The notes: generated by a model from the letters alone, not told the origin. Shown: positions 1,198 to 34,500, counted from the stretch's first letter. The stretch is DNA of 64,000 nt from Octopus sinensis (GCF_006345805.1 NC_042997.1:87296001-87360000), one strand, 5' to 3'. Numbers and translations: made by a program.

Positions 1198-1246
1198 AAG
1201 CATTGTATTTCAACAGAAATAGAAAAGTGTTAAGCACAGTACTTAC

Positions 1247-2234
1247 TACATAACCAGATGGGACCTCTCCAGTTGCTGTTGCCACCAAACATATTAGTAG
1301 GTGATTCTCCTGGAGAATATCTCAGGATTCTGTTGTTAGCTCTCTTTACAGGTATATCATCATCACTTTCCTCTTCTTCTATTACATTTTTATCATCCAT
1401 TTGCATGTCACTTTCAAGATTTGTAGAACTCTCCTCTTGATCGGCTTCAGTCTGTTCAGCAGTTGCCATAATAATTATAGATGACTTCTCATCTTCACTC
1501 TCCTCTTCCTCCTCCTCCTCTTCTTCTTCTTCTATTTCTTCCTCTTCTTCTTCTTCTTCTTCCTCACTAACTTTCTCACTTTCTTCCTCACTAACTTTCT
1601 CACTTTCTTCCTCACTAACTTTCTCACTTTCTTCCTCACTAACTTTCTCACTTTCTTCCTCATTTTCTTTCTTGCTTTCTTCCTCATTTTCTTTCTTGCT
1701 TTCTTCCTCATTTTCTTTCTTGCTTTCTTCCTCATTTTCTTTCTTGCTTTCTTCCTCATTTTCTTCCTCTTTTTCCTTTTTTTCCTCTGTTTCATTTTCT
1801 TTCTCCTTTTCTTTCTCTCTCTCTTTTCTCTCTCTCTCTCTTTCTTCTCGCTCTCTTTTTTTTTTCTCTTTCTTTTCTTTTATTCTTTCTTCTCTCTCTC
1901 TCTTTTTTCTTTCTCTCTTTTCTCGCATTCTTTCTTCTCTCTCTCTTTTTTTTTTCTCTCTCCTTTCTCTCACTCTTTCTTGTCTCTCTCTTTCTTGTCT
2001 CTCTCTTTCTTCTCTCTCTCTTTCTTCTCTCTCTCTTTTCTGTCTCTCTCTTTCTTGTCTCTCTCTTTCTTTTCTCTCTCTCTCTTCTCTCTCTCTTTCC
2101 TCTCTCCGTTTTTGTTTCTCTCTTTCTTTTGCTTCCTCTCTCTCTCTACAATGACATTCTTCATCAATGTCGTGGAAACTACTTTGACTCATCCCCAACT
2201 GTACTGGGGCTCTGTAAGGATTTTGTTCATGGTG
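1247..2234 (-). CDS. GH63-like gene exon 16 with large low-complexity insert (HHEQNPY...[E/R/K repeats, poly-E]...[24 protein letters not shown])
   Basis: Strong T-rich ttttag acceptor at 2235, gtaagt donor at 1246, 988 nt open frame joining two conserved motifs; phase 0 to 1. Both ends are secure; whether the interior is fully exonic is less certain. Confidence 0.78.
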
Positions 2235-5200
2235 CTAAAAAAAAAAATAAAAAAAAACAAAAAACCACATAAATCTCTGTTGAGTGGTTTTGAAAAGAAG
2301 TGAGAAATGTATCTTCATTCTTTCAAGTCACACATATACTCCTGAAAATTATACTGTTTATTATTGAGTTTAAATCCTACAGAAATCAAGCTTTGCCTGT
2401 CATTCCTCCAGGACTGGTAAAATAAAACACTACTTGGATAGACGATATCAACTAACACCTTCCCTCAAAATTATTGGCCTCATGCCTAAATCGTTATCAT
2501 CATTGTCATCATGATCACAGAAGTTCAAATCCTGTTGTAGTCAACTTTGTTTTTCATTTTTCTGAAGTCAATAAAATAAGTATCATTCAATTCACTGCTA
2601 AGAAAGTTCACCATGAGGGAAGTTTACCAAGAAAATATATCCATAGTACCTCACCATTAATAGTTAATCTATTTTATAGCATAAAAAGCAAACAAAAAAA
2701 AACCAACAAAAAAAAACGGTGTATTGATGACACTGAACTTTAACTTTTCCTGTAGTGAACTGATGATGGTGAACTTTCCCTGCGGTGAATTGATGACAGT
2801 GAACTTAGTGGGCATGTCTTTTCAGGATTGATAGAATAAAGTATCTGTCAAGCACTAGGGATTGAGTAATTGACTGTATGCTCCCCTTAAAACTAATGGT
2901 CTGGTGCCAAAATTAGAAAGAGCTATAATAATACTTATTTTTATAGTGGATGGAACATGTGGAAGAGGAAGACTTAGGAAGACATAGGATGAATTACTGA
3001 AGGATGACCTCCAGACACTGACCCTCTCACATGAGATGACAAAGGAACAAGATACCTGGCATCTTGCTGTACTCAAGAAGACCTGTCCTCCACAGCAGAT
3101 GTGTTAAGGTCGCTACCCCTGGTGAAGAGGATTGGCCTGCAAGAGTTATGTGCCAATGCCATGTAAAAAGAATTTGTGCCAGTGTCACGTTAAAAACATT
3201 CAACAAACACTGTAAAGTGGTTGGCATTAGGAAGGGCATCCAGTCACAGAAACCAAACCAGTCAGACTAGAACTTGGTGCAGCTCTCTAGCTTACCAGCT
3301 CTGGTCAAATCATTCAACCCATACTAGCATGGGAAATGGATGTTAAGAGATTATTATTATTGTTGTTATTATTATTATTATTATTCAGTAGTTTTATTTT
3401 TATAGCGTGCTTTCACTTCACTACCGAGTGCAGCTTTGTGTGCCTTGGGTATGTGCTGTGATTTGTTGTGATGCTCTGATGGTTATTGTATGGAAAGTGT
3501 TCTGTGTAGGATGTGTGCAGTGCCTAGTAGTGCAATTTTCTGTATGTTATATGTGTTTGTAAGTCCTGGTGTTTTTGTTATGTATTTGTCTGAATATTTT
3601 TTTATCATGCCTAATGCACCTACTATGATAGGAATTGTTTCTGTTTTCAGATTCCACATTCTAGTTACCTCTATTTCCAGGTCTTTGTATTTTGAGAGTT
3701 TCTCCATTTCTTTTAGAGACACGTTGTCATCTGCCGGTATTGATACATCAATTAGAAAGCGTTTTTTTTCTTCATGATCTCTGACAACTATATCTGGTCT
3801 GTTGGCCTTAATTTCTCTATCTGTGTGTATCGGCATATCCCAGAGTATGGTTGCTTTCTCGTTTTCTGTGACCTTTTCTGGTGTGTGCCTATACCATCTT
3901 TTTCTGTTGTTATTCCATAATGTTGGCATAGCTTCCAATGTATGTAGGTTCCAACTCTGTCATGTCTGTGAATATATTCCTTCTTAGCCAGGACTGGGCA
4001 GCTAGAGATAATATGATTTATTGTTTCTTGTCCATCTCCACATATTCTGCAGTTACTTGTTATATTTCTTTTCATTACATGTTTTTGGCAATTTCTGGTG
4101 GGGAGGCTTTGGTCTTGTGCTGCAATTAAAAATCCCTCTGTTTCTGCTTTGAGTCCTGAGCTTCTCAACCATTGCTGGGATTTTTCTTTGTCTATTTCTT
4201 TTGCGTTTAGTTTAGTCCAGTATTTACCATGAAGGGGCTTTTCTTGCCATCGTTTTATCATGGTTCGTTGCTGTTCTATTTTTAGTTTGGATTTCATTTG
4301 TTTTATAGCTTTTGTTGTTTCTTCATCTTCTTCTTCTTCTTCATATTTATTAGGTGGTATGATTTCTTGTTTGTATTTGTCAGCTTCCTTAAATACTGAG
4401 AACAGTATTTTGTTTTGCTCGTGTTTTGCCGCTATTTGTATCAGTCTTCCTTCCTTCTGAAGTAGATATTTTTGCAGTCCTATGGTGGTTATTTTATAGT
4501 AGTTTTCCAGCTGTATAAGGCCTCTACCACCTTCTATACATTGTATATATAGTCTTTCTATGTCAGATTTTGGGTGATGCATCCTAGATCCTGTCATTAT
4601 TTTTCTTGTTTTCCTATCTATTTTGGTCAGTTCATTTCGTGTCCAGTTAAGGATATTGTAGCTGTAACTTATAACTGGGACAGCTAAAGTGTTAATACCT
4701 ATTATCTTGTTTTTAGCATTGAGCTCTGTTTTTAGTATTGATCTAACTCGCCTATAATATTCTTTTTTTATTTTCTCTTTCATTTGTGTGTGTTGTGTCT
4801 TATCTAGTTCATGGATTCCTAAGTATTTGTAAGTTTGGCTTTGGTCTAATTCTTTTATTTCATTGGTTTTATCTAGTGTGATGTTGCTACTCTTAACTAG
4901 TTTTCCTCTTTTCATGGTTACTTTGGCGCATTTTTCTAATCCAAATTTCATATCTATTTCTTTGGTAAATCCATGAACTGTCTTTAATAGTGTTTCCAGC
5001 TGTTTGTCATTTGCAGCGTATAGTTTTAGGTCATCCATATATAAAAGGTGGCTGATGGTTTTGCCGTAACATTTATATCCGCATCCAGTTCTATTTAGTA
5101 TATCAGATAGAGGTGACAGTGCCAAGCAGAAAAGGAGTGGAGAGAGTGTGTCTCCCTGGAATATTCCTCTTCTAATGGGGATGTCTTTGGTTTTCATGAG

Positions 5201-8200
5201 TCCCTCTTTTGTTTGGAGGTGTAGGACTGTTTGCCATTTATTCATAGAGTGCTCTATGAATTTTATGATTGTTGGTGCTACTTTGTTAATGGCTAGTGTT
5301 TCGAGGATCCATGTGTGGGGGATGCTATCAAACGTCTTTTTGTAGTCAATCCAGGCCATACTGAGGCCTTTCTTCTTTCTGTGGCTGTCTTCAGTTATGG
5401 CTTTATTAATCATTAGTTGATCTTTACAGCCATATGAGCCTTTGCGACATCCTTTCTGCTCTTCTGGGAACAGTTTGTTTTCGTCCAGGTGCTTGTTCAA
5501 CCTTTGCGATATCACTGCAGTAAATGCCTTGAACATTGTAGGGAGGCAGGTTATTGGTCTGTAGTTTTTTGGTTTTGCTGTCTCATTTGATTTGGGAATT
5601 AAGATGGTTTTCCCCTTCGTGAGCCATTCAGGCATTGTCTCTGGCTCTGCTAGTATGTTGTTAAAGTTTTCAGCCAGCTTTTTGTGCATTCCTGTTAGAT
5701 ATTTCAACCAGAAGTTGGGGATCTTGTCATGCCCAGGTGCCTTCCAGTTGCTTAGTCTTTGCAGTGCCTGGGTGACCTCTTCAGTTGTTATGGGGGTCCA
5801 AAGTTGTTCAGATGCCGAGTTTGTTATTTTGATACTCCTTTTTTTTGGTTGTTCGTTCACCGACCATATTTCTCTCCAGAATTCTTCCAATTCTTCTGCC
5901 GTTGGTGCTGCAGTGACTTCTATTTTATTTTTGCCAAGTTCTTGGTAGAACTTTTTGGGGTTGGAGTTGAACTTTTTGTTTTGTTCAAAGAAGCGCTGGC
6001 GTTTCTCGTACCGGCGGATCCTTTGTGCTTTGGCAAGGATATCTTGCTTCAGCAAATCTTTCTCTGTGATGTTATATTTGCGGAGTATTTTTGTTTTCTT
6101 TTTGTTGCTCAGTAGCGTTGATTGTTTGCTGATTTCATTAAGAATCGACAGATCTTTTCTCATTTTTTGTATTTTGTTTTGGATGTTATTTATCCACAGG
6201 GTTTGTTTGGGTGGTGGTACTCCTGTTTATTATTATTATTATTATTATTATTATTGGCAAGCTGGTAAAATGCTTAGTGGTATTTCGCCTGAAGCTAGCT
6301 TCTGAGTTTAAATTCCGCTGAGGTCAACTATGCTTTTCAACCTTTTGGGGTTGATAAATTAGGTACCAGTGAAACACTGGGGTTAATGTACTCGACTAGT
6401 ACCCTCCCCCCAAATTTGGAGCCTTGTGCCTTCAATAAAAAGGATTATTATTATTATTATTGGTGAGCTGTAGAATTGTTAGCATGCTGGATGAAATGCT
6501 TAGCGGCAATTCACCAGTTACTATGTTGAGTTCAAATTCTGCCAAGGTTGACTTTGCCTTTCATCCTTTCAGGGTGGATAAATTAAGTACCAGTTAAACA
6601 CTGGGGTTGATGTAATTGACTAATACCCTCCCACAAGATTTCAGGCCTTCAGTAGAAAGGATTATTATTATTATTATTATTATTTAGGTAGCAAGCTGGC
6701 AGAATCATTAGCATGCTGGGCGAAATGCTGCTAAGCATTTTGTCTGTCTTCGAGTTCAAATTCTGTCAAGGTCAACTTTGCTTTTCTTCTTTTTAGGATT
6801 GATGAAATAAGTACCAGTCAAGCACTGGGATCAGTATAAACAACTAGCGCTCACCCTTCAAAATTGCTTGCCTTATGTCAAAAATTAGAAAGTATTATTA
6901 TTATTATTAAAGCAAAGAGTTGGCAGAATCATTAGTACGCTGGGCAAAATGCTTAGCAGTATTTCACTCATCTTAACAAATTCTGCCGAGGCCAATTTAG
7001 CCTTTCATCCTTTAGGGCCCAATGAAATAAGTACCAGTTACATACTGAGGTTGATATAATCAACAATCCACCTCTCCCGAAATTTCAGTCCTTATGCCTA
7101 TAGTTGAAAGGATCATTATTATTATTATCATTATTGACATGATGATGGCTCACTTGCATCTAATGAGGCTGCAAAGAGAGAGACTTGGAGATGCCACTAT
7201 GAAAGGTTGCTAAATGAAGAAAATGGGAGAAAGAGAGTCTGCCAAATGTTGACCCAACAGAGGGACCAGCTATCTGAATTGAGAGTACTTTGGTAGATAA
7301 AGCAATTAAAGGCGTGAAAACAGGAAAGGCCCCTGGACCATAGGTAATCACCACAGAGATGCTTAAAATATCTGGCAGTGTAGGTTATAGTGTAGTTGCC
7401 CATATAGTCAATCAGGAGATACATGAAGGAGTCATGCACAATGACTGGTGTAGCGGCACCATGGTCAAGTGCTACAAAGGTAAAGGTGACGCATTAGATA
7501 TGAATAATTACAGAGGTATCCAGTTGTTGGACCTGGTGATGAAAGTCATGGAGAGGGTCATAGCCCAACTAATTAGGGAGAGAGTTAGTTTAGATGAGAG
7601 GCAGTTTGGGTTTGTACAAGGGAGAAGCACATCTGATACTATATTTCTGGTAAGACAGCTGCAAGAGAAATACTTAGCCAAAGATGAACCTCTGTACTTG
7701 GCTTACATTGACATGGAGAAAGCCTTTGACAGGGTCCCCCGATCCCTTATCAAGTGGTCAATGTGGAAACTAGGGATAGATGAATGGTAAGTGAGAGCTG
7801 TACAAACCATGTACAGGGATGCTGTCAGTAAGGTGAGGTTGGCAGCGAGTATAGCGAAGAATTCTGGGTAGGGGTAGAGGTCTACCAAGGATCAGTCCTC
7901 AGCCCCCTTTTTATTCATCATAGTCCTCCTGGCAATAACAGAGGAATTCAAGACAGGATGCTCCTGGGAGTTCCTCTATGCTGATGACCTTGCTTTAATT
8001 ACTGAGTCACTATCAGAACTAGAGGAGAAGCTTCAGATGTGGAAGCAAGGATTAGAATTGAACGGCCTTGGAGTCAATCTAGCAATAACCAAAGTCTTTG
8101 GTAGAAACTCCATAAGATGTACCCAGTGTAAGCTTTGGACACATAAAAAGTGCAGCAATATCAAAGGAAGGCTAACTAGGAAGATAGTATTTGTATGTCA

Positions 8201-11200
8201 CAAATGCTCAGGTGCTATAAACACTGAAAATGTGTGGAAAACAGCTTCCATCAATATGCCAGGGGGGAAAACTAGATGTAGTTGATAGCTTCCATTACCT
8301 AGGTGACCAAGTCAGTAGCAGGGGCAGATGCTCTGAGAGTGTAGCTGCTAGAATAAGAATAGCCTGGGCAAAGTTCAGAGAGCTCCTACCTCTGTTGGAC
8401 CGAAAGGTAGCCTGTACGACACGTGTGCGAACAGTCATGCTTCACAGCAGTGAAATATGGGCTGAGACTGCTGAGGACATTCGTAAGCTTGCAAAAAAAT
8501 GAAGCCAGTATGCTCTGCTGGATGTGTAATATCAGTGTGCATACACGACAGAGTGTAAGTTCCCTGAGAGAAAAGTTGGACATACGAAATAATATTTACC
8601 AGAGACAAATATAATTCACAGGGAATGAAAGAGAGTTTATCTAAAATGAAGACTGAGATAGAGGAATGAATCTGTGGAGCAGTTGCTCAACTAATAAGAC
8701 CCCTTTTTCAGTTTTCAGGCATAGCATTAAGGGAGAAAAATTTGGTGATGTCTGTTTCAGATCAACTTGATCATACTGAGTTAACCCTTTAGTTTTCAGA
8801 TTATTCTATTAAGCATATCCTTTATTTATTTAAATTGTTTTGAATTACTCATGTATTATCCCATAGCTTCAAGATTTTAATGATGTGGTAGTTTATTTTT
8901 AGAATGATATTGTAGGGTAAGTGTGAGAGGCCAGATCTGGCCTGTTTGAACATAAAGTAAGGAGAATATTTTGGTCTGATATGGCTGGTTTAAATGCTAA
9001 AGGGTTAAAGAAAAACACAACAACAATCCCACCAAAAAAAAAAAAAAAGCAATGATGAAGCCAGAAAGAAAACTTTGTTTCTGTGACAACCAGTGAGTGG
9101 ACAACACAGTCACTCAGTAACAAGGAAGAATGTGTAAAAAATATCTATGCAATGTTATGCATTCCAGAATCATGAAACTTCCAATCAGAGATGTACTTAG
9201 CATTCAGAAAGAAGAAGAAAAAATGGTTATAGGAACAGGCATGGCTCTGTGATAATAAGTTTGTTTCCCAACCACATGATTCCAGGTTCAGTCACACTGC
9301 ATGACACCTTGGGCAAATGTCTTCTATAATCTCAAGCCACTAAAGCCTTGTGAGTGGATTTGGTAGAAGGAAACTGAAAAAAACTTGTCATATATACATT
9401 TATATGTATATATATGCATGTGTTGCTTTTGTTTTTGACTTTGCCCCCCCCCCAACCAGCTGAAAACTGGCATTGGTTTGTTTATGTCCCTAAAACTTGG
9501 TTCAGTAAAAAGACCAATAGTATAAGTACTAAGCTTTAAAAAAAAGAAAAAACAAAAGTACTTGGCAGTAGTTTTTCCTTCTGTATTGCATAGATACTCT
9601 CTTGCCATTCTTGCTATTAAAAAATACAGTGATTCAGTGACTGACTTGTTGGAAATCTATAACCACTAGTGCCACTGCTCACAAAAACCAAAAGGCAGTG
9701 GAGTGACGTTAAAAAATGCCTTGAATTATTTAACTAAACTTTTCTTGGTTTTCATTTTTTTATGCTTTAGCCAAAAGAGGAAGGGCAGAGCATATGACCT
9801 TTTTTAGGTTTTCCAAGATTGGGTGAGAGGAGGGGAAGAAGTTTGCAGACTAAAGACATGATCTGAATGCTTGCAACAGATTGGAATCTGCTAAAACCAG
9901 AGGAGAGGTAGGTGGTGGTGTTAAGCCAGACATCAGAGTAATTCCACCACCTATTCTAAATTCAGATATTGTCAGAGTTAACTTTCCATTTCAAGAGTGA
10001 TGCTCCTTATTGTGTCCCATATTTCTGATTTTTGCTTTGTAAAAGTGCCTGTGTGGTGCTACATAAAAGCATCTATGCAGTGCCACATAAAAGCACCCAG
10101 CACACTTCATAAAGCGGTTGATATTAGGAAGGGCATCCAGCTGAAGAAACCATGACAAATTAGACTGGTGTCAGGTGGAGCTCTCCAGCTCTGGCCAAAC
10201 CATCCAACCCATGCCAGCATGGACAATGGACATTAAATGTTGATAATGATGGTAATTTTACCAGGTTTGGTAAAATAAGTGCACTTACATAAACATATAG
10301 GTATGTGGGTATTTTGAAAATAACTCAAGGGGTGATGACTGTGCCCAGCATAGTTATGGGTTGTCCTTTGGCAAGGCATAACACCCATTCAGCCACCCTG
10401 CCAGGGATATAGCAGATTGGCAGATGTGATGAGGCAGTATAAGAGCTCAACTGAACCAACAGTGCTTCCTACATTGATGTTGAGCAGAGGAATCCTAGAA
10501 GGTCAACGGTCAGGATCACCCAGGTCTATCAAGAGAGTAACTGCAACACATCCATTGTTGTGTAATCAGCTGATGAAAGACTCGTGATTCAAGCTTCCAA
10601 TTCAAATATGAATAGTAGAACTGGGTAGCAACAGGGAGTCATGGGAATCTGTGCAAGCAGCACAACCAAGCTATATAAACATACAAGCAAAAACATGCAC
10701 ACATCCACACATGCATATACATGCATGCAAGCACAGGCAGTTTGTTTAATTCAAACTTTGAAGATTCTATTTTATGAATAGGATGTAAAAGAAAAGTAAC
10801 AACAAACCTTTGAAAGAGATCTAATTCCAAAGGGAGACAAGAATTCTGTCTCACTGAATAGGTAACCCAGAATATGTTGGAGCTGTTCAGAAGAAACGAA
10901 TGATAAAAATAGCTTGTTGTTGTCGATATGCACCTAAAAGAAAAGAAAAGAAAACAATGAAGCAGCTGCAGCCATAGACTTTGAATGAAACGAATATCTG
11001 GAGATAATTGATATATTAACCCTTTCATTACCAAGCTGGCTGAAACTGGCTCTGGCTCTGAGTACAAACGTCTTGTTTTCGTAAGTTTTTGAATTAAAAT
11101 CTTCCACCAAACCTTAGTTACAATTTATGTTTCTAACACTAGCTGAATGATAATTAAGTTATTTTACTAAATTCTTTGTTATATTTAAAGTAATTGAAAG

Positions 11201-13124
11201 AAACACAGAACATTTCAAAATAAATATAATAATGAAAGGGTTAACAGCTGTTGTTATGGTTTAACTCCAGGTCAAGCATAATCAAGGAGACGTGTGATCA
11301 AAAGTATTCCAGTTGTAACCAACCTGTTTTTCTCTTTTTAAGCTCAGATTACATTGTCGAATTTCTCCCTTTCGTTTTTGTTTTATTAAAGATGGTGAGA
11401 TTTGGCTACTATCTTTAGCAAGTTCAGTGACATCATAGTATTTCCTTCATTGACTCATGTTGATGTACTTGTAGTGTATAGTGGTAACAACCTGGGTTGG
11501 CAAGATGCAGTGGTATTGTATGTAGTTGTAACTGCATACATTAGTGGAATGATGAAGAGGTAGTAATTATTGTTGTCTTACCCTAGGTCAGTCTTGATAC
11601 AGCAGACCATTCCAACTGTGACCATACCACCTTTTATTCAGACATAGAATTATATTATCTAATGTACTCATCCTTTTTAAGTTTGGTAAAAATATGATGT
11701 AAGGGTGATTTAGCTGCTATTACTAGAAGTTGAGTGACTATGTAAAGACTTCCTAGTAGTAGGCAATGGTAATGGTAAAAGATGAAATATATATCAATTA
11801 ATCAATGCAGTGTAGTAAGATGGCAGTGGTGGCAGTGGTTGTTAGTGTTGTTTTGTCCTAGATCAGCCTTAACAGAACAGATTTATGACTAAAAGCATGA
11901 CCATCGCATTCCTTTTTTTTAAAGGGAGATTTAGCAACTGTTTCTCTCTGGGAAAGTGACCATTTAAAGGCTTTATGAAGTGTAGTGATAGGTGTATCCA
12001 ATAGAGATACAGTGTAGATGCAGCTGTAGTTGTGTAACCACAGGTCAGCTCTGATCAAGCAGTCCTGTTGTATGTAGAAAGTTGATCAAACTACCAGGCA
12101 TGAACCACAAGTCTTAGTTATGCCATTATACCATGTGTCTACCTAGCTGAGGACAATAGAGCTTGCTCTGATACATAGTGACAAAATGTATGAGGTGCTG
12201 CAGCATTGATAGCCTGGACATATTGCACTCAAACTACTATCAAGTTAATTTCTATATGCTTAGAAATTCTGGTGGTGGTTACAGTGGAAGTAGGCAAAAT
12301 GGACTTGGTTAGACTATGAAAGTTGCTATTCCTCTGCTCTAATTGTTTCTGTTTTAGACTAGGGAAGCTATTCATGCCACAGCTACTTCTGGTGTGTCTG
12401 TGTTTTTTATGTTTGTCTAGGTCAGTGGTTCTCAACCATTTTGTCCCAGTGGACCCATTTCATTGCTATTTTACTCAGTGGGTGGGATTCTCAAAAACAT
12501 TCGATATCAAAAACTCCTATTATACTTTTGTGATTAAATATTATTAGGAATTGTATACAAAATTGTTTAAATATTTTGTGTATAACCAGCACATAAGTTG
12601 CAAATAATATAACCATCTTATCTATATATATAAAACTGAGAATGTGTGTGTGTCTGTCTGTTACCATTCTGTTGATATGCTTATGTCTTTTTCTTGGGAT
12701 GTCTACTGTATCAGGAATTTAACCCACATGGATATACATAGGATTGCACCTAAAGACTTACGCTCATGGATCTATGTAGGATTGCACCTAGGGATTCATT
12801 CTTTGGTTTCTATAACTTTGGAAAGTTGAACTATAAACTTCTTTGCTTCTGTCTCCTTCTCTCTTTCCATCTCCTTATTCTTTTACTCCCTTCCTCAATG
12901 TTGTCGTGGTGTATAGCATTCTCATTTTCTATATCTTTTTTTTCTCAATTTGTCTCTGATGACAGAATATCCCATACCCGGGGATATCCCAGAAAGAGCT
13001 GTAAGATTTTAAATTCCTTCCTGTAACAATATTGTATATGACTTGAGATGTTTGCTTTACCATAATGTTTGATGCCCTGTTTAACAATTATATATATATA
13101 TCGATATGTAGATATGTATATATT

Positions 13125-13192
<68 letters not shown>

Positions 13193-13269
13193 GTATATAT
13201 ATATATATCTATCTATATATAGATATGTATATATTTGTGTGTGTGTGTGTGGGTGTATATGTATGTATC

Positions 13270-13309
<40 letters not shown>

Positions 13310-13459
13310 AATATATATATATCTATATATAGATATGTATATATTTGTGTGTGTGTTGTATATGTTATATATATATTATATATATATATATATATTATAT
13401 ATTATATATATATATTATATATATATATATAGATATGTATATATTTGTGTGTGTGTGCG

Positions 13460-13555
<96 letters not shown>

Positions 13556-13627
13556 CTATATATAGATATGTATATATTTGTGTGTGTGTGTTGTATATGT
13601 TATATATATATATTATAATATATATAT

Positions 13628-13676
<49 letters not shown>

Positions 13677-13887
13677 ATCTATCTATATATATAGATTGTA
13701 TATATACATATATATGTATATATATACACGTATATATATGTATATAACATATATATATATGTATATGTATATATATATATGCATGTATATATATGTATAT
13801 AATATATATATATGAATATGTATATATATAATATGTATATATATATATATGTATGTATAATATATATATATATATATGTATGTATAT

Positions 13888-13934
<47 letters not shown>

Positions 13935-13960
13935 CATCATCATCGTGATATACATATATA

Positions 13961-13998
<38 letters not shown>

Positions 13999-14009
13999 GT
14001 ATATATATG

Positions 14010-14080
<71 letters not shown>

Positions 14081-14126
14081 TGTATATAATATATATGTAT
14101 ATAATATATATATAATATATATTATG

Positions 14127-14164
<38 letters not shown>

Positions 14165-14191
14165 TGTATATAATATATATATATGAATATG

Positions 14192-14266
<75 letters not shown>

Positions 14267-14935
14267 CAAAATGAGAAAATGGAGAAATATATCTAAATCA
14301 ATTATCAACTGTCAGATATACCGAATCATATACTTTATTAAAACACTACACAATAGCAATGAAATTAGACATTAATACAGTACAATAATTACAATCAATA
14401 TGGTGAGATATAACTAAATAAATATAACAAGATATAAAAATACATTTACATTATAACTGACAGCTATTTCGGCCATGAAGATAGGTATGTCTCATTTAAC
14501 CTATTAGCCATATATTGCAGGTATAAATGAGACATTAACAAGAATATCTTACGGCCTCTTCGGAGATTCTAATGCAAGTATGAGTACAAACCCTAAAATA
14601 ATTTACATATAAATATGAATATGAGTGCATACATACTCATATTCTTACATACATATACATATACACAATAATACAATATAAACAATATAAATCAATATAC
14701 ATCAACAAACACAATAATGTTCCATATTGAATGCCACAGCTCCTCAACCAACATCAAGAAACCACAACAGACACACTCACACTCAATGCAGGAATATATA
14801 TTAAACAGTTCAATATATTAAAATGTGTCACTTCACAAAAAGCCAATAAAGTTAATACCACCACCATAGTACCATTCAAGGCAAATGGATAGATATATGT
14901 TATCCCATAGAGGGTTGAATTTACAACCCCTATCT

Positions 14936-14973
<38 letters not shown>

Positions 14974-14983
14974 TATATATATA

Positions 14984-15039
<56 letters not shown>

Positions 15040-15116
15040 GTATATATATATATATATGTATATATATATGTATATGTATATATGTATATGTATATATATA
15101 TATATGTATATTATAT

Positions 15117-15166
<50 letters not shown>

Positions 15167-15232
15167 ATGTATATATATATGTATATGTGTATATATATAT
15201 ATATGTATATATGTATATGTATATATGTATTG

Positions 15233-15311
<79 letters not shown>

Positions 15312-15397
15312 TATATATATATATATGTATATTATATATTATATCTATATATATAATATATATTATATATATATATATATATATGTAATATATTATA

Positions 15398-15487
<90 letters not shown>

Positions 15488-15694
15488 TGGCCACCTGTGC
15501 GGGTGGCACGTAAAAAGCACCCACTACACTCACGGAGTGGTTGGCGTTAAGAAAGGCATCCAGCCGTAGAAACACTGCCAGATTTGACTGGGCCTGATGA
15601 AGCCTTCTGGCTTCACAGACCCCAGTAGAACCGTCCAACCCATGCTAGCATGGAAAACGGACGCTAAACGATGATGATGATGATGATGATGATG

Positions 15695-15740
<46 letters not shown>

Positions 15741-18700
15741 TATATATGTAATATGTATATATATTTGACAGCCAAATGTGGAGTCCTGTATGGAACAGTG
15801 CTATTGATGTTTATAGCCCCAGGAAGACATCTCTTCCAGCTAGCTAATGATACACATTCCGATTAGTATTTGCGAGGGGAAGTCATCGCTTCTATCCCTA
15901 GCCTTACATGATACACATGGACTCAAGTTCCTGGGTGGTTACCCGCACTCAACGTATGCTAATCACCAGCTAGTGATGGAAACTCACCTCACTCACAAAA
16001 TATTATATGCTTTTTCCAGCTAGTGATTAACACATGCTGAAGAAAGGTAACCACCCAGAAACTCGAGTCCTTCATCATCATCATCATCATTGTTTAATGT
16101 CCACCTTCCATGCTGGCATGGGTTTGACTGAGGACTGGTGAGCCAGATGGCTGCACCAGGCTCAGTCTGATCTGGCAAAGTTTCTACAGATGGATGCCCT
16201 TCCTAACGCCAACCACTCCAAGAGTGTAGTGGGTGCTTTCACATGCCACTGGCATGAGGGCCAGTCAGGTGGTTCTGGCAACAACCATGCTCAAAAGGTG
16301 TTTTTTACGTGCTACCTGTATGGGAGCCAGAAATGTTGTTTCTCACGTGCCACCAGCACATGTGCCAGTAAGGTGATGCTGGCAATGATCACACTTGAAT
16401 GGTGCTTTTTACATGCCACTGGCACAGGAGCCAATCCATGGTCCTGGCAATGATCACGTTCAGATGTGCTTTTAATGATCCACTGGCATGAGTGCCAATC
16501 AGGCAGTACTGTCATTGGCCACATCAGCAATTTTGATTTCACTTGCCTCAATAGGTCTTTGCAAGCAAAGTTTATTGTCCAATGAATAAGGGGTACTCAT
16601 AAGTGGACTCATTACACCCACTGGCATAGGCCATGGGCTATGGTCTCATTTGGCTTGTCAGGTCTTCTCAAGCACAGCATATCTCCAAAAGTTTCAGTCA
16701 CTAGTCATTGCCTCAGTAAGGCCCAATGTTCGAAGGTCATGCTTTACCACCTCATCCCAGGTCTTCCTGAGTCTACCTCTTCCACAGGTTCCCTCAACTG
16801 TTAGGGTGTGACACTTTTTCACACAGCTGTGCTTATTCATTCCCAACACATGACCATGTCTGCACAGTCATCTATCTTGCACACCACATCTGATGTTTCT
16901 TAAATCCAACTTTTCTCTCAAGGTGCTTACATCCAGCATAACATACTGGCTTCATTCCTTGCAAGCTTATGCATGTCCTCAGCAGTCACAACCCATGTTT
17001 CACTGCGATGTAGCATGGCTGTTTGTACACATATGTCATACAGTCTACATTTTATTCTGAGCGAGAGGCCTTTTGTCACCAGCAGAGGTAGGAGATCTCT
17101 GAACTTTGCCCAGGCTATTCTTATTCTCACAGCTACATTTTTAGAGCATTCACCCCTGCTACAGACTTGGTCACCTAGGTAACGGAAGCTATCAACTACT
17201 AGTTTTTCACCCTGGAATGTGGCAGAAGCTGTTCTCTGCACATTTTCATTGTTTATAGTACCTAAGCATTTGTCGCATACAAAAACTATCTTCCTTTGAT
17301 ATTGCTGCACCTCTTATGTGTCCATAGCTTACACTAGGTACATATTATGGTGTTTCTACCAATGCCTTTTCTAAAGATCGAGCAGGGCAATTTACTTGAA
17401 GGGATTTGTGATTTGTTTGCCTTCCTACTTATTAAGACTTTGATTTTAGCTAAGTTGACTCCAAAGCCCTTTGATTCTAATTCTTGCTTCCACGCCTGCA
17501 ACTTTTCCTCTAGTTCTGACAGTGACTCAGCAATTAAAGCAAGGTCATCAGCATAGAGGAGCTCCCGAGAGCATCCTGTCTTGAATTCTTCTGTTATTGC
17601 CAGGAGGACTATGATGAATAAAAAGGGGGTTGAGGACTGATCCTTGGTGGACCCCTACACCTACCAGAAATTCTTACTGACAGCATCCCTGTACATGGCT
17701 TGTACAGCTCTCATTTACCATTCCTCTATCCCTAGTTTCCACATTGACCACCAGATAAGGGATCAGGGGACCCTGTCAAAGGCTTTCTCCATGTCAACAA
17801 AAGCCAGGTACAAAGGTTTATCTTTGGCTAGGTATTTTTCCTGCAGCTGTCTTACCAGAAATATAGCATCAGTGGTGCTTTTCCCTTGTACGAACCCAAA
17901 TTGCATCTCGTCTAAACTGACTCTCTCCCTAATTACCTGATTCAACAACTTGATACTTCTGTAATTATTTGTATCTAAAGTGTCACCTTTACCTTTGTAG
18001 CAGTTGACTATCATGTTGCTACACCAGTCATTGGGTATGACTCCTTCGTGTATCACCTGGTTAACTATGCGGGTGACTAGCTATAGCCGACACTGCCAGA
18101 TATTTTGAGCATCTCTGCAGTAATTTCTGATGGGCTGGGGGCTTTCCCTGTCGTCATACTTTTAATTGCTTTATCTACCAAGGTACTGTCAACTCGGATA
18201 ACTGGTCCCTCTGTTGGGTCGACATTTGGCAGACTCTCCAAACCTCTCTCTTTGTATCCTCATTTGGCGTAAGTGAACCATCATCCATGCGAACACATTT
18301 CTCTCCTACATCACAATTCTCTCTCACACACTGTCTTGCAACACGAAATACCTCAAGTCTTTGGTCTTCACGGCGCAGAACATTGGCAAAGTTTTTCTTA
18401 TCTGCTTCCCCTCTGGTTAAATAAACCTGTCTCCTAGCTTCCCTTCAAGCAATCTGATACAATTCCCTGCTTCCATCATTCTTCCAGTCCTTCCAAGCCT
18501 GTTTCTTTTCCTTAATGGCCCTGTCAACAACATTGTTCCACCACCACATTAACTTGGGTCAAGAGGGGACTTTGCACCATCTGTAGATCTGGTCAGTGGC
18601 CCTCAGCAGGTTGTCCCATAAAAACTTCCAGTTGTCTTCCACATCATGTGATGCTATATTCCCCCTCTATTTCATCAAAAGCTTCGAGTAATACGTCTCT

Positions 18701-28597: not shown

Positions 28598-31500
28598 GTG
28601 TGTGTGTGTGTGTGTGTGTGTGAGTGAGAGAGAGAGAGAGAGAGAGTTGTAATTATACTATCTAAAATATATGAACACTTTAATGATCACTTTCATTTGA
28701 ATGATTATTTTCTTATGCTGGTATAGATTGGAGGAGACTGAAATAAATCATGCTACCACATCTTGCATGAGCTGCTGACCTACTGAGATCTAGTATTTTG
28801 ATATCTGTTTTCATCCTTCCTCCTATAACTTCACTATCTCACTCTGTCTGTCTGTCACTCTCACTTTTTTACACTATGGATACCTTCCACGTGTACCTTT
28901 CTTTTATTTTTTATTTGTTTCAGTCATTGGACTGCCTTGAATGATTTAGTCAAACTAAAGAAATATTTCTTACAAAAAGATGAATGTGGGGATTTGTTTT
29001 TTAGACCCAACTCAATTTTGATTGCACATGTAACATTAGGAAGGGCATCCAACTGTTGAAACCATGGCACAACAGACAACTGGAGTCTGGACAGCTCCCT
29101 GCTAGCCAGTTCCATGTCAAACATCCAACCCATGCCAGCATGGAAAGCGGACATTAAATGATGATGATGATATACGTAGATTGATATCAAAGTATTTTTC
29201 CCATGTCTTAAACTCACACAATACATTTCCAATGTAGTTCTCTTTCTGTTTTCATCTTCAGTAGTTTGTTTAATTAACTTATCCACTCAAATTCCACATA
29301 TCTGCCTTTCACAAAGAGTGTTCTTCTCAAGAGTCTTGCCCAAATACCTTTTCCTTCTTCTAGATATTTACTATTTCAATGCTTGCTTCACTCTTCTCTT
29401 TTACTAAATTTTCAAATGGGAGCACTTTACATGTTTGTTGTAGAAAAATAGAACCCAAAACTAAACAAAAACACAATTACTTAAAAAAACTCAATCATGT
29501 AGATTTTGCTTTGGAAATTTTTTTAATTGTTTTAAAATAATTAACAAAAGAGAAAATGAATAATCTTACCTGACCATTTGGATGTAGATATTTATCAGAT
29601 AACAGTAAAAGAAGTTGCTTCTTGGAGAAATCAGGGTCAAGGAAACTGTATGGAATCATATGAAATGCCAAATCCCAAGCAGCATACTGGAACAGCAGGT
29701 AAAAAATATAAGAGATAAGGAACTTATGATTGACATATTGCTAAAAGAAAACATTGAAAAATAAGAATCCACAAGAGTTATTGTATATGAAATATAGATA
29801 TATTGATTAATAACTGAGGTTTGATGATAAGCTATTGAAAATTCTATCAAGTTGCATGGAATGTGGAAAGATTTGAACTTAACATTATAAGCTAACAAAA
29901 CATTTGTCAATTATGCAGTACCTTAGTTTCTTACTTGTGGGTAGTAGATGCTATGATGCCTATTCATAACAAGGAAGACTAATTTTACTGAGTTAAATTT
30001 CACTAACAAATACAATGTATGAAGGTCAGCTGAAAAGTTCATAGGTTGACCAAGTTATTCTCATGGAATGTGACCAAATGGGGTTTATTTTTCAACTTAG
30101 TCTCTTTTGCAGCCCACACACTTCTTCCATTGGTGTTGCAGTGCTTGGATCCTGTTGGTGAAGAAGCTTTCATCCTGTTGCTCAAGAAAGTCAACAGCAG
30201 ATATAACATCATCATCACTGAGACACTGGTTCTCAGCCAAGTAGTTTTTCATGTTGGGGAACAGATAGTAGTCACACAAGGCTAAATAAGGATAATAGGG
30301 GCAGTGATGAGCCAGTTCAATGCCACGGTCATGCACAGCAGCCATTGAAACACAAGACTTGTGTACTGGAGCATTGTCATGATAAGCCATGGCTGTTGTT
30401 GTGGACTGCTGCTTGTGTCTGTTTGCCGTCTGTGTACTGTGTCATCTCATGCTCTCTCTGCTATATCCCAAAGCTGTCTGTTTGGTAGTCACAATGTGTC
30501 AATTTTATACTGATTAGGGGAGGGGGGGCTCAAAAAGATGAGTGCTAAAAGTAGAAATTATCGCTGGAGACTATTTTACATGAAGTGGTGATCGATCAGA
30601 TTTTGTTGATCACATGGGTAATATTCTTTCCATGCGAAGTTGTGATTGGTCAGTTTTCGTTGATCATGAGGGTAATGTTCAAGTGAATCACAACATGGGT
30701 GATTGCTGCATATTCCTGCTGCACATCCATTGCATTTTAAATTCAATTAGCTGTAACTCTAAAATATCATTTAGACACAAATTAGCTCCCAATTTATAAT
30801 CAATTTTAATGAACATTTTGAATGGAAAGGAAATAATTATTAGACAAACCCAAGGGAACTCCCATTTGTCAGGCATAGAAATAATATCACAGTTTTGGAG
30901 GTGAGATATCCAGTGCTGATTTCTCGAAGCATCAGTCCAGTTATTACAACCACTTGCACAAAACAGACTTTCTGGGGACATTCTTTCTAAAATACAAATA
31001 GAACATCACAATGAAAATCAATCAATAAAGTTAATATATCAAGCCAAAGAAAGCATTTTATAGTTTTAAATTATTAACAAAAATATGTTCAAGAAACAGA
31101 CAAACAATTCAAAACTATTTGTATTATTCATTCATACATATACATATATTCAAAAACACACACAACACATCCACCTCTACTACCCCTAAACATCCAGCCA
31201 TTTCTCACTCTTCATATTGTATATAAGACAATCCACCCAATTCTTACTTCTTTGAACTGTGTCTTGGGAACACTGTCTCTATTTATGTTTTCCTTTCAAT
31301 CACTGATCATCATGTCCCAAGTGAATATTAACCATATTAATTTTACTCAAGTAACACTGTCTTACTATCTTTTAGTCAAGGATCCATGGAAGTTGCAAGT
31401 ATTATCCTTCATCCTCAAACTATATCATAGGTTTCAAATTTTGGCACAAGGCCAGCAATTTTGGGAAGTAGACAAGTCAACTATATTGATCCCAGTGTTC

Positions 31501-34500
31501 AACTGTTACTTATTTTATTCCTCCTGAAAAGATGTAAGGTAAAGTTGACCTCAGCAGAATTTGAACTCAAGACATAATGATGGATGAAATGCTACTAAGC
31601 ATTTTACCTGGATTGCTAACAATTCTGTCAGCTTGCCACCTTATCAAACAATATTATAAATTATGAAACATATACACAGATGAATACATTAGTGTGTGTG
31701 TGTGTGAGAGAGTGAATTTGATTTTTAGTGACAACCCTAGATATGTTTCAATCTAACTAAACCTCATCAGCAAAACATAGTCTAGCCACGACCACTTTAT
31801 CGTAAAATGATTAGAGAGATTATAGAATTTTTGAGAATGAACTGAATGGTGTTATACATTTAAATGCACTCACAAGGCTTTGGTCGGCCTGAGGCTATAA
31901 TAGAAGATACTTGCCCAAGGTACCATGCAGTGGGACTGAACCTGGACCCATGTGGTTGGGAAGCAAGCTTCTAACCACACAGCCATGTTATTTTTTACTT
32001 ATTTCAGTCATTAGACTGCAGCCATGCTGGGGCACCACCTTGAATCTTTAGTCAAATTAATTGACCCCAGTACTTATTTTTTTTTAAGACTGGTACTTAT
32101 TCTATCAATCTCTTAACCACACCAAGAGTGTAGTGGGGGCATTTTATGTGCTACCGGCACGAGGGCCAGTCAGGCGGTTCTGGCAATGACCACACTCACA
32201 GTCAAAAGGTGTTTTACATGCTACCTGCGCAGGAGCCAGTCTGGCGGCACTGGCAACAACCATGCTTGAATGTTGTTTTCACGTGCCAACAACACATGTG
32301 CTGGTTAGGCAACGCTGGCTATGATCATGCTTGAATGGTGCCTTTCACATGTCACCAAACAGGAGTCATTGCCTCAGTAAGGCCCAATGTTCAAAGGTCG
32401 TGCTTCACCACCTCATCCCAGGTCTTCCTGGGTCTACCTCTTCCACAGGTTCCCTCAACTGCTAGGGTGGTACACTTTTCCTCTAGTTCTGATAGTGACT
32501 CAGCAATTAGAGCATGGTCATCAGCATAGAGGAGCTCCAAGGGGCATCCTGTCTTGAATTCCTCTGTTATTGCCTGGAGCACTATAAGAGGAGGCTGAGG
32601 ACTGATCCTTGGTGGACCCCTACCTCAACTCAGAATTCTTCAGTGTACTCATTGCTAACCCTCACCTTACTGACAGTATCCCTGTACATGGCTTGCACAG
32701 CTCTCACTAACCATTCAGCTATCCCTAGTTTCCTCATTGACCACCAGATAAGGGATTAGGGGACCCTGTCAAAGGCTTTCTCCATGTCAATGAAAGCCAG
32801 GTATAGAGGTTTATCTTTGGCTAGGTATTTCTCCTGCAGCTGTCTTACCAGCAATAATGCATCAGTGGTGCTTTTCCTTTGTACGAACCCAAACTGCATC
32901 TCATCTAAACTGACTCTCTCCCTAATTAGTTGGGCTATGACCCTCTCTGTGACCTTCATTATCTAATCCAACAACTTGATATCTCTGTAATTATTTGTAT
33001 CTGGAGCATTAAAAATACATACACACACACACACATACATTACATACATACACACACACACACACAAATACACACATATATACACATACACACAATGAGT
33101 TTCTTTCAGTTTCCGTCTACCAAATCCACTCACATGGCTTTGGTTGGCCCAAGGCAGTAGTAGAAGATACTTCCCCAGGGTACTATGCAGTGGGACTGAA
33201 CCCATAACCATGTGGTTGGGAAGGAAGCTTCTTACCACACAGCCACCCTGTTTTCAATTATCAATGAGTCCTGAGGTTTCATTTTCCAAAGAATAAAAAT
33301 CCTTACAAGCAGATATATCAGAGACATTTTTTTTTACCTGAACGTATAATAGTTGATTCTATCCATTTACGAACATCATAACAATAAAACTGTTTGGACC
33401 AGAGGAGACCAGAGTATGCTTGACAGGCAATATTTCTTTCTTCTTCAGTCCAAGAGGGACTTAATATCTAACAAAAGATAAATACAGTTCCTTTAAAATT
33501 TTAAAATTAATTTTGTAGACACAACATGAATAAATCATATTATATGATTTCAATAAAAATACAAAAAAACATAAAATTCTTCTTCTTCAAGTAGCCACAG
33601 CTGAGATGTGTTTTACCACAGCAAGACTACGTTTCTCATTAGTTTTGATAGGTTCTCAATTTTATGGTGAGTGTCTCTCTCTGCCAATAACATCTATGTC
33701 ACAGCTCAGCACAATAGCAGTGGTTAGCAAAACTTATTTCCTTGAGCAACATTAGTAGAGATGAGTGGAATATCTCCATAAAACTTCTCTTTCATCTTGT
33801 ACTCATGCCATGACATGTTTTAAACCTTCATGAGAAACCTGGTGTAAGCCTAAGTGAAAGTGCAAGGTTTAGTGGTTAGGGGATTCAGGTCATGATCATA
33901 GGGTCATAAGTTTGACTCCTGGTGGTGCGTTGTGTCCTTAAGCAAGACACTTTATTTTATGTTGCTCCTGTCCACTCAGCTGGCAAAAATGAGTAGTACC
34001 TGTATTTCAAAGGACCAGCCTTGTCACACTCTGTGCCACAGTGAATCTTCCTTAGAACTACATTAAGAGTATACGTGTCCGTGGAGAGCTCAGCCACTTG
34101 CACATTAATTTCAGGAGCAGGCTGTTCTGTTGATCGGATTAACTGAAACCCTTGTTGTTGTAACCGACAGAGTGCTAGTTATACAATCTAAGTGATCTTG
34201 AAGATTCTCCTTCATAATCCTGGTTTTGACTCCATAAAGAGGAATGCTCTCAATATAAAATAAAGTAGCATAGTTCTTTAATATGGCTACCAGATATATA
34301 GTGATATGAAGGATATCCAACAATGAATGACTACATCAAATTTAGATACTATTGTATTCAAAATGTTTACTTCATTTCACAAATGTTAATGCAGTATTCA
34401 TATTGTTGTGTTCATAATATTACCAAAGTATTTGACAGTACAGCTAGTAAAGTGACATAGTATAATTCTTGGATCTTAACAACTATAATTGACATCTAAT

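Follow-up and report, generated by a model that had tools for sequence, protein, structure and literature searches.

A codon-phased, charged repeat expansion in a surface loop of a GH63-like glucosidase gene of Octopus sinensis

Exon 16 of the 19 exons in a YMR196W-type, GH63-like gene of Octopus sinensis (1247..2234, minus strand) is 988 nt long, i.e. 329 codons plus 1 base, and encodes a charged, repetitive insert. The insert is real, and it is probably translated. The best explanation, to which we give a probability of about 60%, is that a low-complexity expansion, translated and lineage-specific, sits on the tip of a surface beta-hairpin in an otherwise intact GH63-like glucosidase. If the whole exon is translated, the insert is very large (about one third of the size of the core), predicted to be partly rigid, and situated between invariant motifs. 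Positions refer to the window, the 64,000-nt stretch of genomic DNA that was analysed (C1:87,296,001-87,360,000, from an assembly of 2.72 Gb in 13,516 contigs), and the coordinates of the gene and of all its parts are on the minus strand.

The gene and its enzyme family

The concatenated exons match, in the protein database, the ‘uncharacterized protein YMR196W [Octopus sinensis]’ (P0001, 1016 aa). Mapped onto the window and the 20 kb below its start, this public model resolves into 19 minus-strand coding exons, which extend from 55,296 down to a point ~4.7 kb below the start of the window. Exon 16, at 988 nt, stands out among exons that otherwise measure about 60–200 nt; the upstream exon 15 is at 10808..10933, and exon 17 is about 700 bp below the start of the window. 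Apart from an internal gap of the model that falls within exon 16 (see below), the gene has 18 introns, all of them GT...AG with pyrimidine-rich acceptors.

P0001 matches the Pfam families PF22422 (MGH1-like_GH; 54.8 bits, cut-off 27) and PF03200 (Glyco_hydro_63 C-terminal; 33.3 bits, cut-off 22.4); a Pfam scan of the exon 16 translation alone gives no match. The same domain matches characterize the YMR196W/MGH1-like GH63 family (PF22422 + PF03200; clan GH-G), the bacterial and invertebrate members of which have 45–50% core identity with the octopus protein and share its LFYEYF...HQTGW and GGFLG motifs. The octopus protein departs from the family in its GIRSLS-GGNSNWRGP loop, which is 317 aa long rather than 31 aa, a difference that leaves its membership unaffected. 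The insert thus sits between two family-invariant motifs, in frame and inside the GH63-like catalytic domain, which is where a preliminary description of the locus had placed it. A full-text search for literature mentioning YMR196W, judged by titles, found no paper on cephalopods or on the loop, and apparently none characterising YMR196W.

An AlphaFold model of P0001 (pTM 0.73, core pLDDT mostly >85) consists of an N-terminal beta-sandwich and an (alpha/alpha)6 barrel. A single-sequence search of the PDB gave no match and a profile search only short GH63 motif matches. The top PDB matches of the model in Foldseek are GH63 alpha-glucosidase I structures (8e3j, 5mhf, 4j5t; E 1e-15 to 1e-12) from Chaetomium, mouse and yeast, with E. 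coli YgjK next. D530 (in GGFLGxDN) and E985 (in LFYEYF) of P0001 are invariant in 24 aligned sequences, and E985 aligns with the Glu in the YxYE motif of yeast glucosidase I. The catalytic general acid and general base of YgjK are D501 and E727, respectively (PMC13671375). We infer that the GH63-like core of the octopus protein appears to be catalytically intact.

A whole-genome search with PF22422 did not recover the YMR196W-type gene, because its exons are short, and found only two intronless GH63 ORFs elsewhere, at C2:121831904-121833070 (L001) and C13496:180342-181436 (L002; 683 aa open). The L001 ORF is 653 aa long and has the GLDDYPR and WEQY...FTGWSAL motifs of a MOGS-type alpha-glucosidase I. 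Single-exon genes or retrocopies are possible readings of the two, as is a duplicate on an unplaced scaffold.

Splice sites and reading frame of exon 16

The acceptor of exon 16 (2235..2264) is a 28-nt T-rich tract followed by AG (ttttttttatttttttttttag), with a pyrimidine fraction of 0.94 that ranks among the highest in the gene; the donor, GTAAGT, is at 1241..1246. Translation starts with HHEQNPY and continues without a stop through to the donor, the phase being 0 at the acceptor and 1 at the donor, and the open frame spanning the exon is 334 aa long (1230..2234). The ORF and splice-site reading therefore bears out the earlier claim of a 988-nt frame open from HHEQNPY to a gtaagt donor. TAG and TGA triplets had also been said to fall only in the other frames, and the stop counts for the three frames of the coding strand are indeed 0, 9 and 36.

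The exon is 82% purine (A 509, G 303, T 107, C 69). When it was shuffled with dinucleotides preserved, either as a whole or region by region, the frame was open in 0 of 5000 shuffles. The ER/K tract alone (see next section) is open in 33% of shuffles because there is almost no T in it, as against 10 of 2000 for the acidic repeats and 4 of 2000 for the unique acidic segment (non-repetitive, 167 nt). The significance of the open frame thus rests on the acidic repeats, the unique acidic segment and the common frame of both anchors. The complement of a purine-rich strand is A-poor, so that the opposite strand is poor in stops; the long ORFs found there (237–272 aa, S/L/F-rich) were considered as genes and rejected as a mirror of the composition. 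The purine-rich GAR content of exon 16 would probably act as an exonic splicing enhancer, helping to define this long exon.

Anatomy of the insert

The exon begins with a unique N-terminal anchor (exon aa 1–29; 2148..2234), which carries the conserved H..NPY motif and the first hairpin strand and includes a Cys/His-containing piece (ECHC in O. sinensis) in common with Argonauta (ECHM). The ER/K tract follows (exon aa 30–140; 1815..2147), built on the pentapeptide (E/Q/K)(E/K)RER from 15-nt units (SAAGAAAGAGAGAGA). Its 111 residues comprise 44 E, 40 R, 18 K, 5 Q and 4 others, so that over about 110 aa more than 90% are E, R or K; there is neither Gly nor Pro, and the net charge is +14. After a K/E-rich transition (exon aa 141–156; 1767..1814) comes an array of 24-nt (8-aa) repeats (1566..1766), in which KENEEESK occurs four to five times and then KVSEEESE three to four times, the copies being mutually identical. 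A poly-Glu run of GAA/GAG with period 3 and one Ile interruption (1498..1565) leads into a unique acidic segment of about 55 aa (1335..1497), predicted to be disordered and 76% identical to its counterpart in O. bimaculoides. Exon aa 141–310 together carry a net charge of about -59. The 29-aa C-terminal anchor (1248..1334) holds the second hairpin strand and the family-invariant GGNSNWRGP.

The periods found in the exon by Tandem Repeats Finder are 15 nt (23 copies), 60, 24 (12 copies), 72, 12 and 3 nt, and there are A10–11 runs within the repeat tract. The 15-nt register is kept across about 22 units (330 nt) with no indel, and the units have diverged to about 77%. Such a (GA)-rich tract, free of 2-nt slips despite the divergence of its units, is what coding constraint would predict. 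Gly is not encoded by any of the 221 low-complexity codons, 21 of the 23 GG dinucleotides straddle codon boundaries, and T is never at codon position 1, although these figures overstate selection since the repeat copies are not independent. In the whole O. sinensis genome (2.72 Gb) the 24-nt unit is found only at the exon 16 locus, which means that the array grew locally; an origin from a dispersed satellite or transposon was rejected for this reason. Codon-phased tandem repeats that are unique genome-wide agree with the original account of a charged insert derived from repeats.

Predicted structure

In the AlphaFold prediction for exon 16 alone, residues 20–175 form a helix, in which 119 residues have a pLDDT of >=90, and the remainder is of low confidence. 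The prediction for P0001 with an alignment has a confident core and makes the retained ER/K part a single helix at 730–790, after which the pLDDT falls to 24–35 (790–877). As predictions, then, both models agree with the long single helix and acidic disorder that had been proposed from the sequence. Opposite-charge pairs at i/i+3 and i/i+4 number about 0.8–1.05 per residue in the ER/K tract and hydrophobic residues are almost absent, and the tract would fit an ER/K single alpha-helix (SAH) rather than a coiled coil.

SAHs such as the lever extensions of myosin VI and X, and that of caldesmon, link two domains or extend a lever. The octopus tract resembles them in being rich in E, R and K, in its i/i+4 pairs, in having no hydrophobic seam and in forming an uninterrupted predicted helix. 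It differs in its unit, an ERER-type pentapeptide rather than E4K4, and in its placement: the helix, in this case a prediction, would be an excursion within a loop, its far end continuing into an acidic chain, predicted to be disordered, that has to lead back to the start. With a rise of 1.5 angstroms for each of 155 residues, the rod would measure about 23 nm. In the AlphaFold model PYRAPV and ILRY, which flank the insert, are short paired strands, placing the insert at the tip of a beta-hairpin. Since the two ends of the insert are anchored at a single hairpin, the rod cannot hold two domains apart; it has no domain at its far end, and a role as a spacer would be geometrically awkward. The tether, spacer, ion-binding and condensate roles suggested in the preliminary description find no support in these analyses. 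The acidic chain may lie along the slightly basic helix.

Loop length and lineage history

Among the 118 homologues that have both the GIRSLS and the GGNSNWRGP motif, the spacing between the two is 31 aa in 108 and 29–32 aa in 110. In a typical homologue 12 aa separate HHEQNPY from YSPGES, in agreement with the ‘about a dozen residues’ given in the preliminary description. The exceptions to the 31-aa spacing are animals in every case. The loop spacing is 317 aa in the O. sinensis genome (an extra ~286 aa), 183 aa in the public model P0001 and 179 aa in O. bimaculoides; it is 146 aa (+115 aa) and 92 aa (+61 aa) in the products of two Logan contigs (P0005 and P0004, respectively), 77 aa (+46 aa) in Argonauta hians, and 66–75 aa (+35–44 aa) in three hemichordates. 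Insert length among cephalopods therefore ranges from 46 to 286 aa.

The orthologous exon of Argonauta is a single exon of 268 nt with a matching poly-T/AG acceptor and A/GTAAGT donor, and encodes 89 aa as against 329 aa. The Logan contigs (L005 and L006, for P0004 and P0005) are 3.7 and 3.5 kb long, with uninterrupted ORFs of 1005 and 1039 aa and UTR-like flanks; being intronless although the gene has 18 introns, they are transcript assemblies. In the tree their clade is sister to the octopods (support 100/99). Read as transcripts, these contigs prove that inserts at the hairpin reach mRNA in the cephalopods that are sister to the octopods. On the evidence of the sequence comparisons, the acidic Ser-rich insert is older than the Octopus repeats and was present in the common ancestor of the octopods and the sister clade; the insert site is cephalopod-wide, while the large expansion is specific to Octopus. 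Orthologue alignment, spacing counts and tree thus support the lineage specificity that had been suggested at the outset. The accompanying claim, that microsatellite expansion made the insert, stands for its enlargement by repeats in Octopus but not for its origin, an acidic insert of 46–115 aa being already present in Argonauta and in L005/L006.

The insert is 76–84% identical between O. sinensis and O. bimaculoides, compared with 93% for the core; the corresponding values for Argonauta are 24–27% and 66–74%. Faster divergence of the insert, together with its variation in length, would fit a permissive, largely disordered loop that is selected for frame and composition. The pattern of divergence lends no support to a sequence-specific function.

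The three hemichordates, Ptychodera, Saccoglossus and Glandiceps (P0006, P0009 and P0010), have acidic inserts at the same hairpin. They are not sister to the cephalopods, which suggests that this loop has received insertions repeatedly. The transcripts L005/L006, from non-octopod cephalopods, have a second acidic Ser-rich insert of ~100 aa after YCYDV.KWF, for which the equivalent position in the octopus gene is about 30850-33340; the octopus protein has a shorter loop of low confidence there (P0001 361–421, pLDDT <50). In the tree, cephalopods, Sinanodonta and Solemya form one clade, and Mytilus, Pinctada, Asterias and Macrobrachium group with bacterial sequences (100/100). These two animal groups could represent old paralogues, horizontal transfer or assembly contamination.

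Length of the insert in the mature protein

P0001 retains 68 + 127 = 195 of the 329 exon 16 residues, with the junction RQKRE/SEKVSEEE, and the mature protein may accordingly have a shorter insert than the exon implies. The missing segment (1629..2030) is 402 nt, exactly 134 codons, and in frame. Its boundaries (agagaa...ggaagaa) are without a GT or GC donor, a pyrimidine tract or real microhomology; lacking a GT and a pyrimidine tract, the gap is probably not a true intron. Rather than splicing, it probably reflects modelling guided by homology, short-read evidence that collapsed, or an allele of lesser length. Four aaa/GTTAGT sites in the 24-nt repeats were considered as alternative 5' splice sites and rejected: they have donor-like scores but are in phase 0, and exon 17 needs phase 1, so that their use would break the frame. 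A protein search for partial Octopus transcripts with the unique acidic segment, covering candidates of 181–576 aa, gave no matches, and the database search with the gene itself yielded no Logan-derived Octopus protein.

It is possible, though rather unlikely, that O. sinensis mRNA has only a shortened insert (~150 extra residues), either by an exitron-like loss of the 402 nt or through shorter alleles. A gap of precisely 134 codons in frame would suit this, as would the gap-free, collinear alignment of P0001 with the O. bimaculoides protein across the junction, but the gap may instead mirror O. bimaculoides homology evidence or a collapse of short reads in the repeats. The identical repeat copies suggest an array that is unstable and possibly polymorphic, which would favour alleles of different length. 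The likeness to exitrons is that P0001 drops an internal, in-frame piece of a coding exon; the difference is that the gap is non-canonical and without a pyrimidine tract, unlike the gene's 18 other introns, making removal by the spliceosome unlikely.

Growth and possible function

Under the preferred explanation, a translated low-complexity expansion, the Octopus loop would have grown by slippage or unequal exchange of codon-phased 15-nt, 24-nt and 3-nt units, and the identity of the 24-nt copies suggests that this growth was recent. The product would be a lone ER/K helix of ~155 residues, roughly 20 nm long and slightly basic (+14), that projects from the (alpha/alpha)6 barrel, and an acidic disordered chain of ~170 residues (about -59) would return the backbone to the second hairpin strand. 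The effect would most likely be small, with the insert acting, for example, as a charged bristle or as a shield on a loop that tolerates it, and with selection acting mainly on reading frame and composition and less on sequence.

Low-complexity loop insertions are familiar from Plasmodium proteins, which have Asn-rich inserts, and from those of Dictyostelium with polyQ/N inserts. The octopus insert is like these in its in-frame repeat growth, its quick turnover in length and sequence between close relatives, and the intact core around it; it differs in being a charged block polyampholyte, part of which is predicted to be a rigid helix. If the whole exon is translated, its value would lie in giving an example of how far a permissive loop can be stretched via codon-phased repeat slippage, and a natural system in which to study ER/K helices fixed at their two ends. 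The non-canonical internal gap, for its part, marks a place where the public gene model is likely to be wrong or uncertain. Part of the insert is already public in protein models, and the finding opens no long-standing question.

We regard it as unlikely that the insert is an adaptive module, in which an ER/K mast and a polyanionic arm serve cation binding, docking, phase separation or nuclear/nucleolar targeting. The reading frame and a helix-compatible composition have been kept, with no Gly or Pro in 111 aa, and the order of blocks, a basic helix and then an acidic tail, is common to two Octopus species; yet divergence in the insert outpaces that in the core, and no insert sequence is conserved with Argonauta. 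Acidic inserts are recurrent at this loop in cephalopods and hemichordates, but among the former their length runs from 46 to 286 aa. KKKRER-type basic clusters adjoin the acidic runs and are candidates for nuclear/nucleolar targeting. With its ends anchored at one hairpin, the rod separates nothing. Decidedly unlikely, too, is that a catalytic-domain hairpin of a housekeeping glycosidase has become a selected appendage in Octopus, in which the slightly basic helix of a ~20-nm ER/K mast would pair electrostatically with its own polyanionic arm of ~170 residues and give the enzyme a new property. Candidates for that property would be cation buffering, docking to a charged surface or partner, condensate partitioning, and nuclear targeting. 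If this were true, no SAH inserted within a loop of an enzyme would have been described before.

Assembly error and cryptic splicing

A very repetitive, A-rich tract such as this one is prone to suspicion of an assembly error that inflated or scrambled the repeat, the true array being shorter and like that of O. bimaculoides; both P0001 and the O. bimaculoides protein are indeed shorter. Indels from long reads would disrupt the frame, however, and here 988 nt are open in a strict 15/24-nt register. The extra part, moreover, has a unit of its own, KENEEESK, and is not made of more copies of the adjoining unit. We therefore consider an assembly error improbable.

AGs within the repeat tract (2145-1498) have upstream pyrimidine fractions of <0.44 (the value of the eighth-best internal AG in exon 16, which is itself outside the tract), as against 0.61–1.0 at the real acceptors of the gene. 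The preliminary description had named removal of the tract as a cryptic intron, for instance via the AG near 1330, among the findings that would count against it; a sequence check gives only a poor in-frame donor for this AG, and no pyrimidine tract. That the whole tract is such an intron, for example from the donor CA/GTTGGG at 2199 to the AG at ~1330, a pair that is in frame and would leave a short, family-like loop, is very improbable: GTTGGG departs from GTRAGT at +3, +4 and +6 and is absent from the twelve best internal GTs, of which only four are not outscored by most real donors; the AG is purine-rich upstream; the resulting loop would be 4 aa short of the invariant family spacing; Argonauta and the transcript contigs retain inserts at the same loop; and there would be no explanation for the frame that stays open across the unique acidic segment (4/2000 shuffles).

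Surrounding sequence

No inverted complement of the AG-rich tract, which could provide a dsRNA or RNA-editing substrate, is present within 8 kb. Exon 16 lies between the two arms of a 109-nt inverted repeat (19-127 and 2991-3099, 77% complementary), which are separated by 2863 nt. They are probably oppositely oriented copies of one short interspersed element, and pairs of this kind can favour the formation of dsRNA or back-splicing. An intronic (GAT)12 microsatellite (1162-1197), about 50 nt downstream from the donor of exon 16, appears as His or Ile runs in the minus frames.

Intron 15 contains, at 3791-6226 on the strand of the gene (minus), an open frame of 812 aa with RVT_1 (2.8e-31) and zf-RVT domains. 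This is a retroelement copy with a long intact ORF, probably of the non-LTR type. Further RT-like fragments are found at about 7344-8500 (plus strand) and 16900-18450 (minus strand). In intron 14, at about 13000-15500, a TA/TATA-rich microsatellite of ~2.5 kb gives rise to artefactual I/Y-rich ORFs in all frames.
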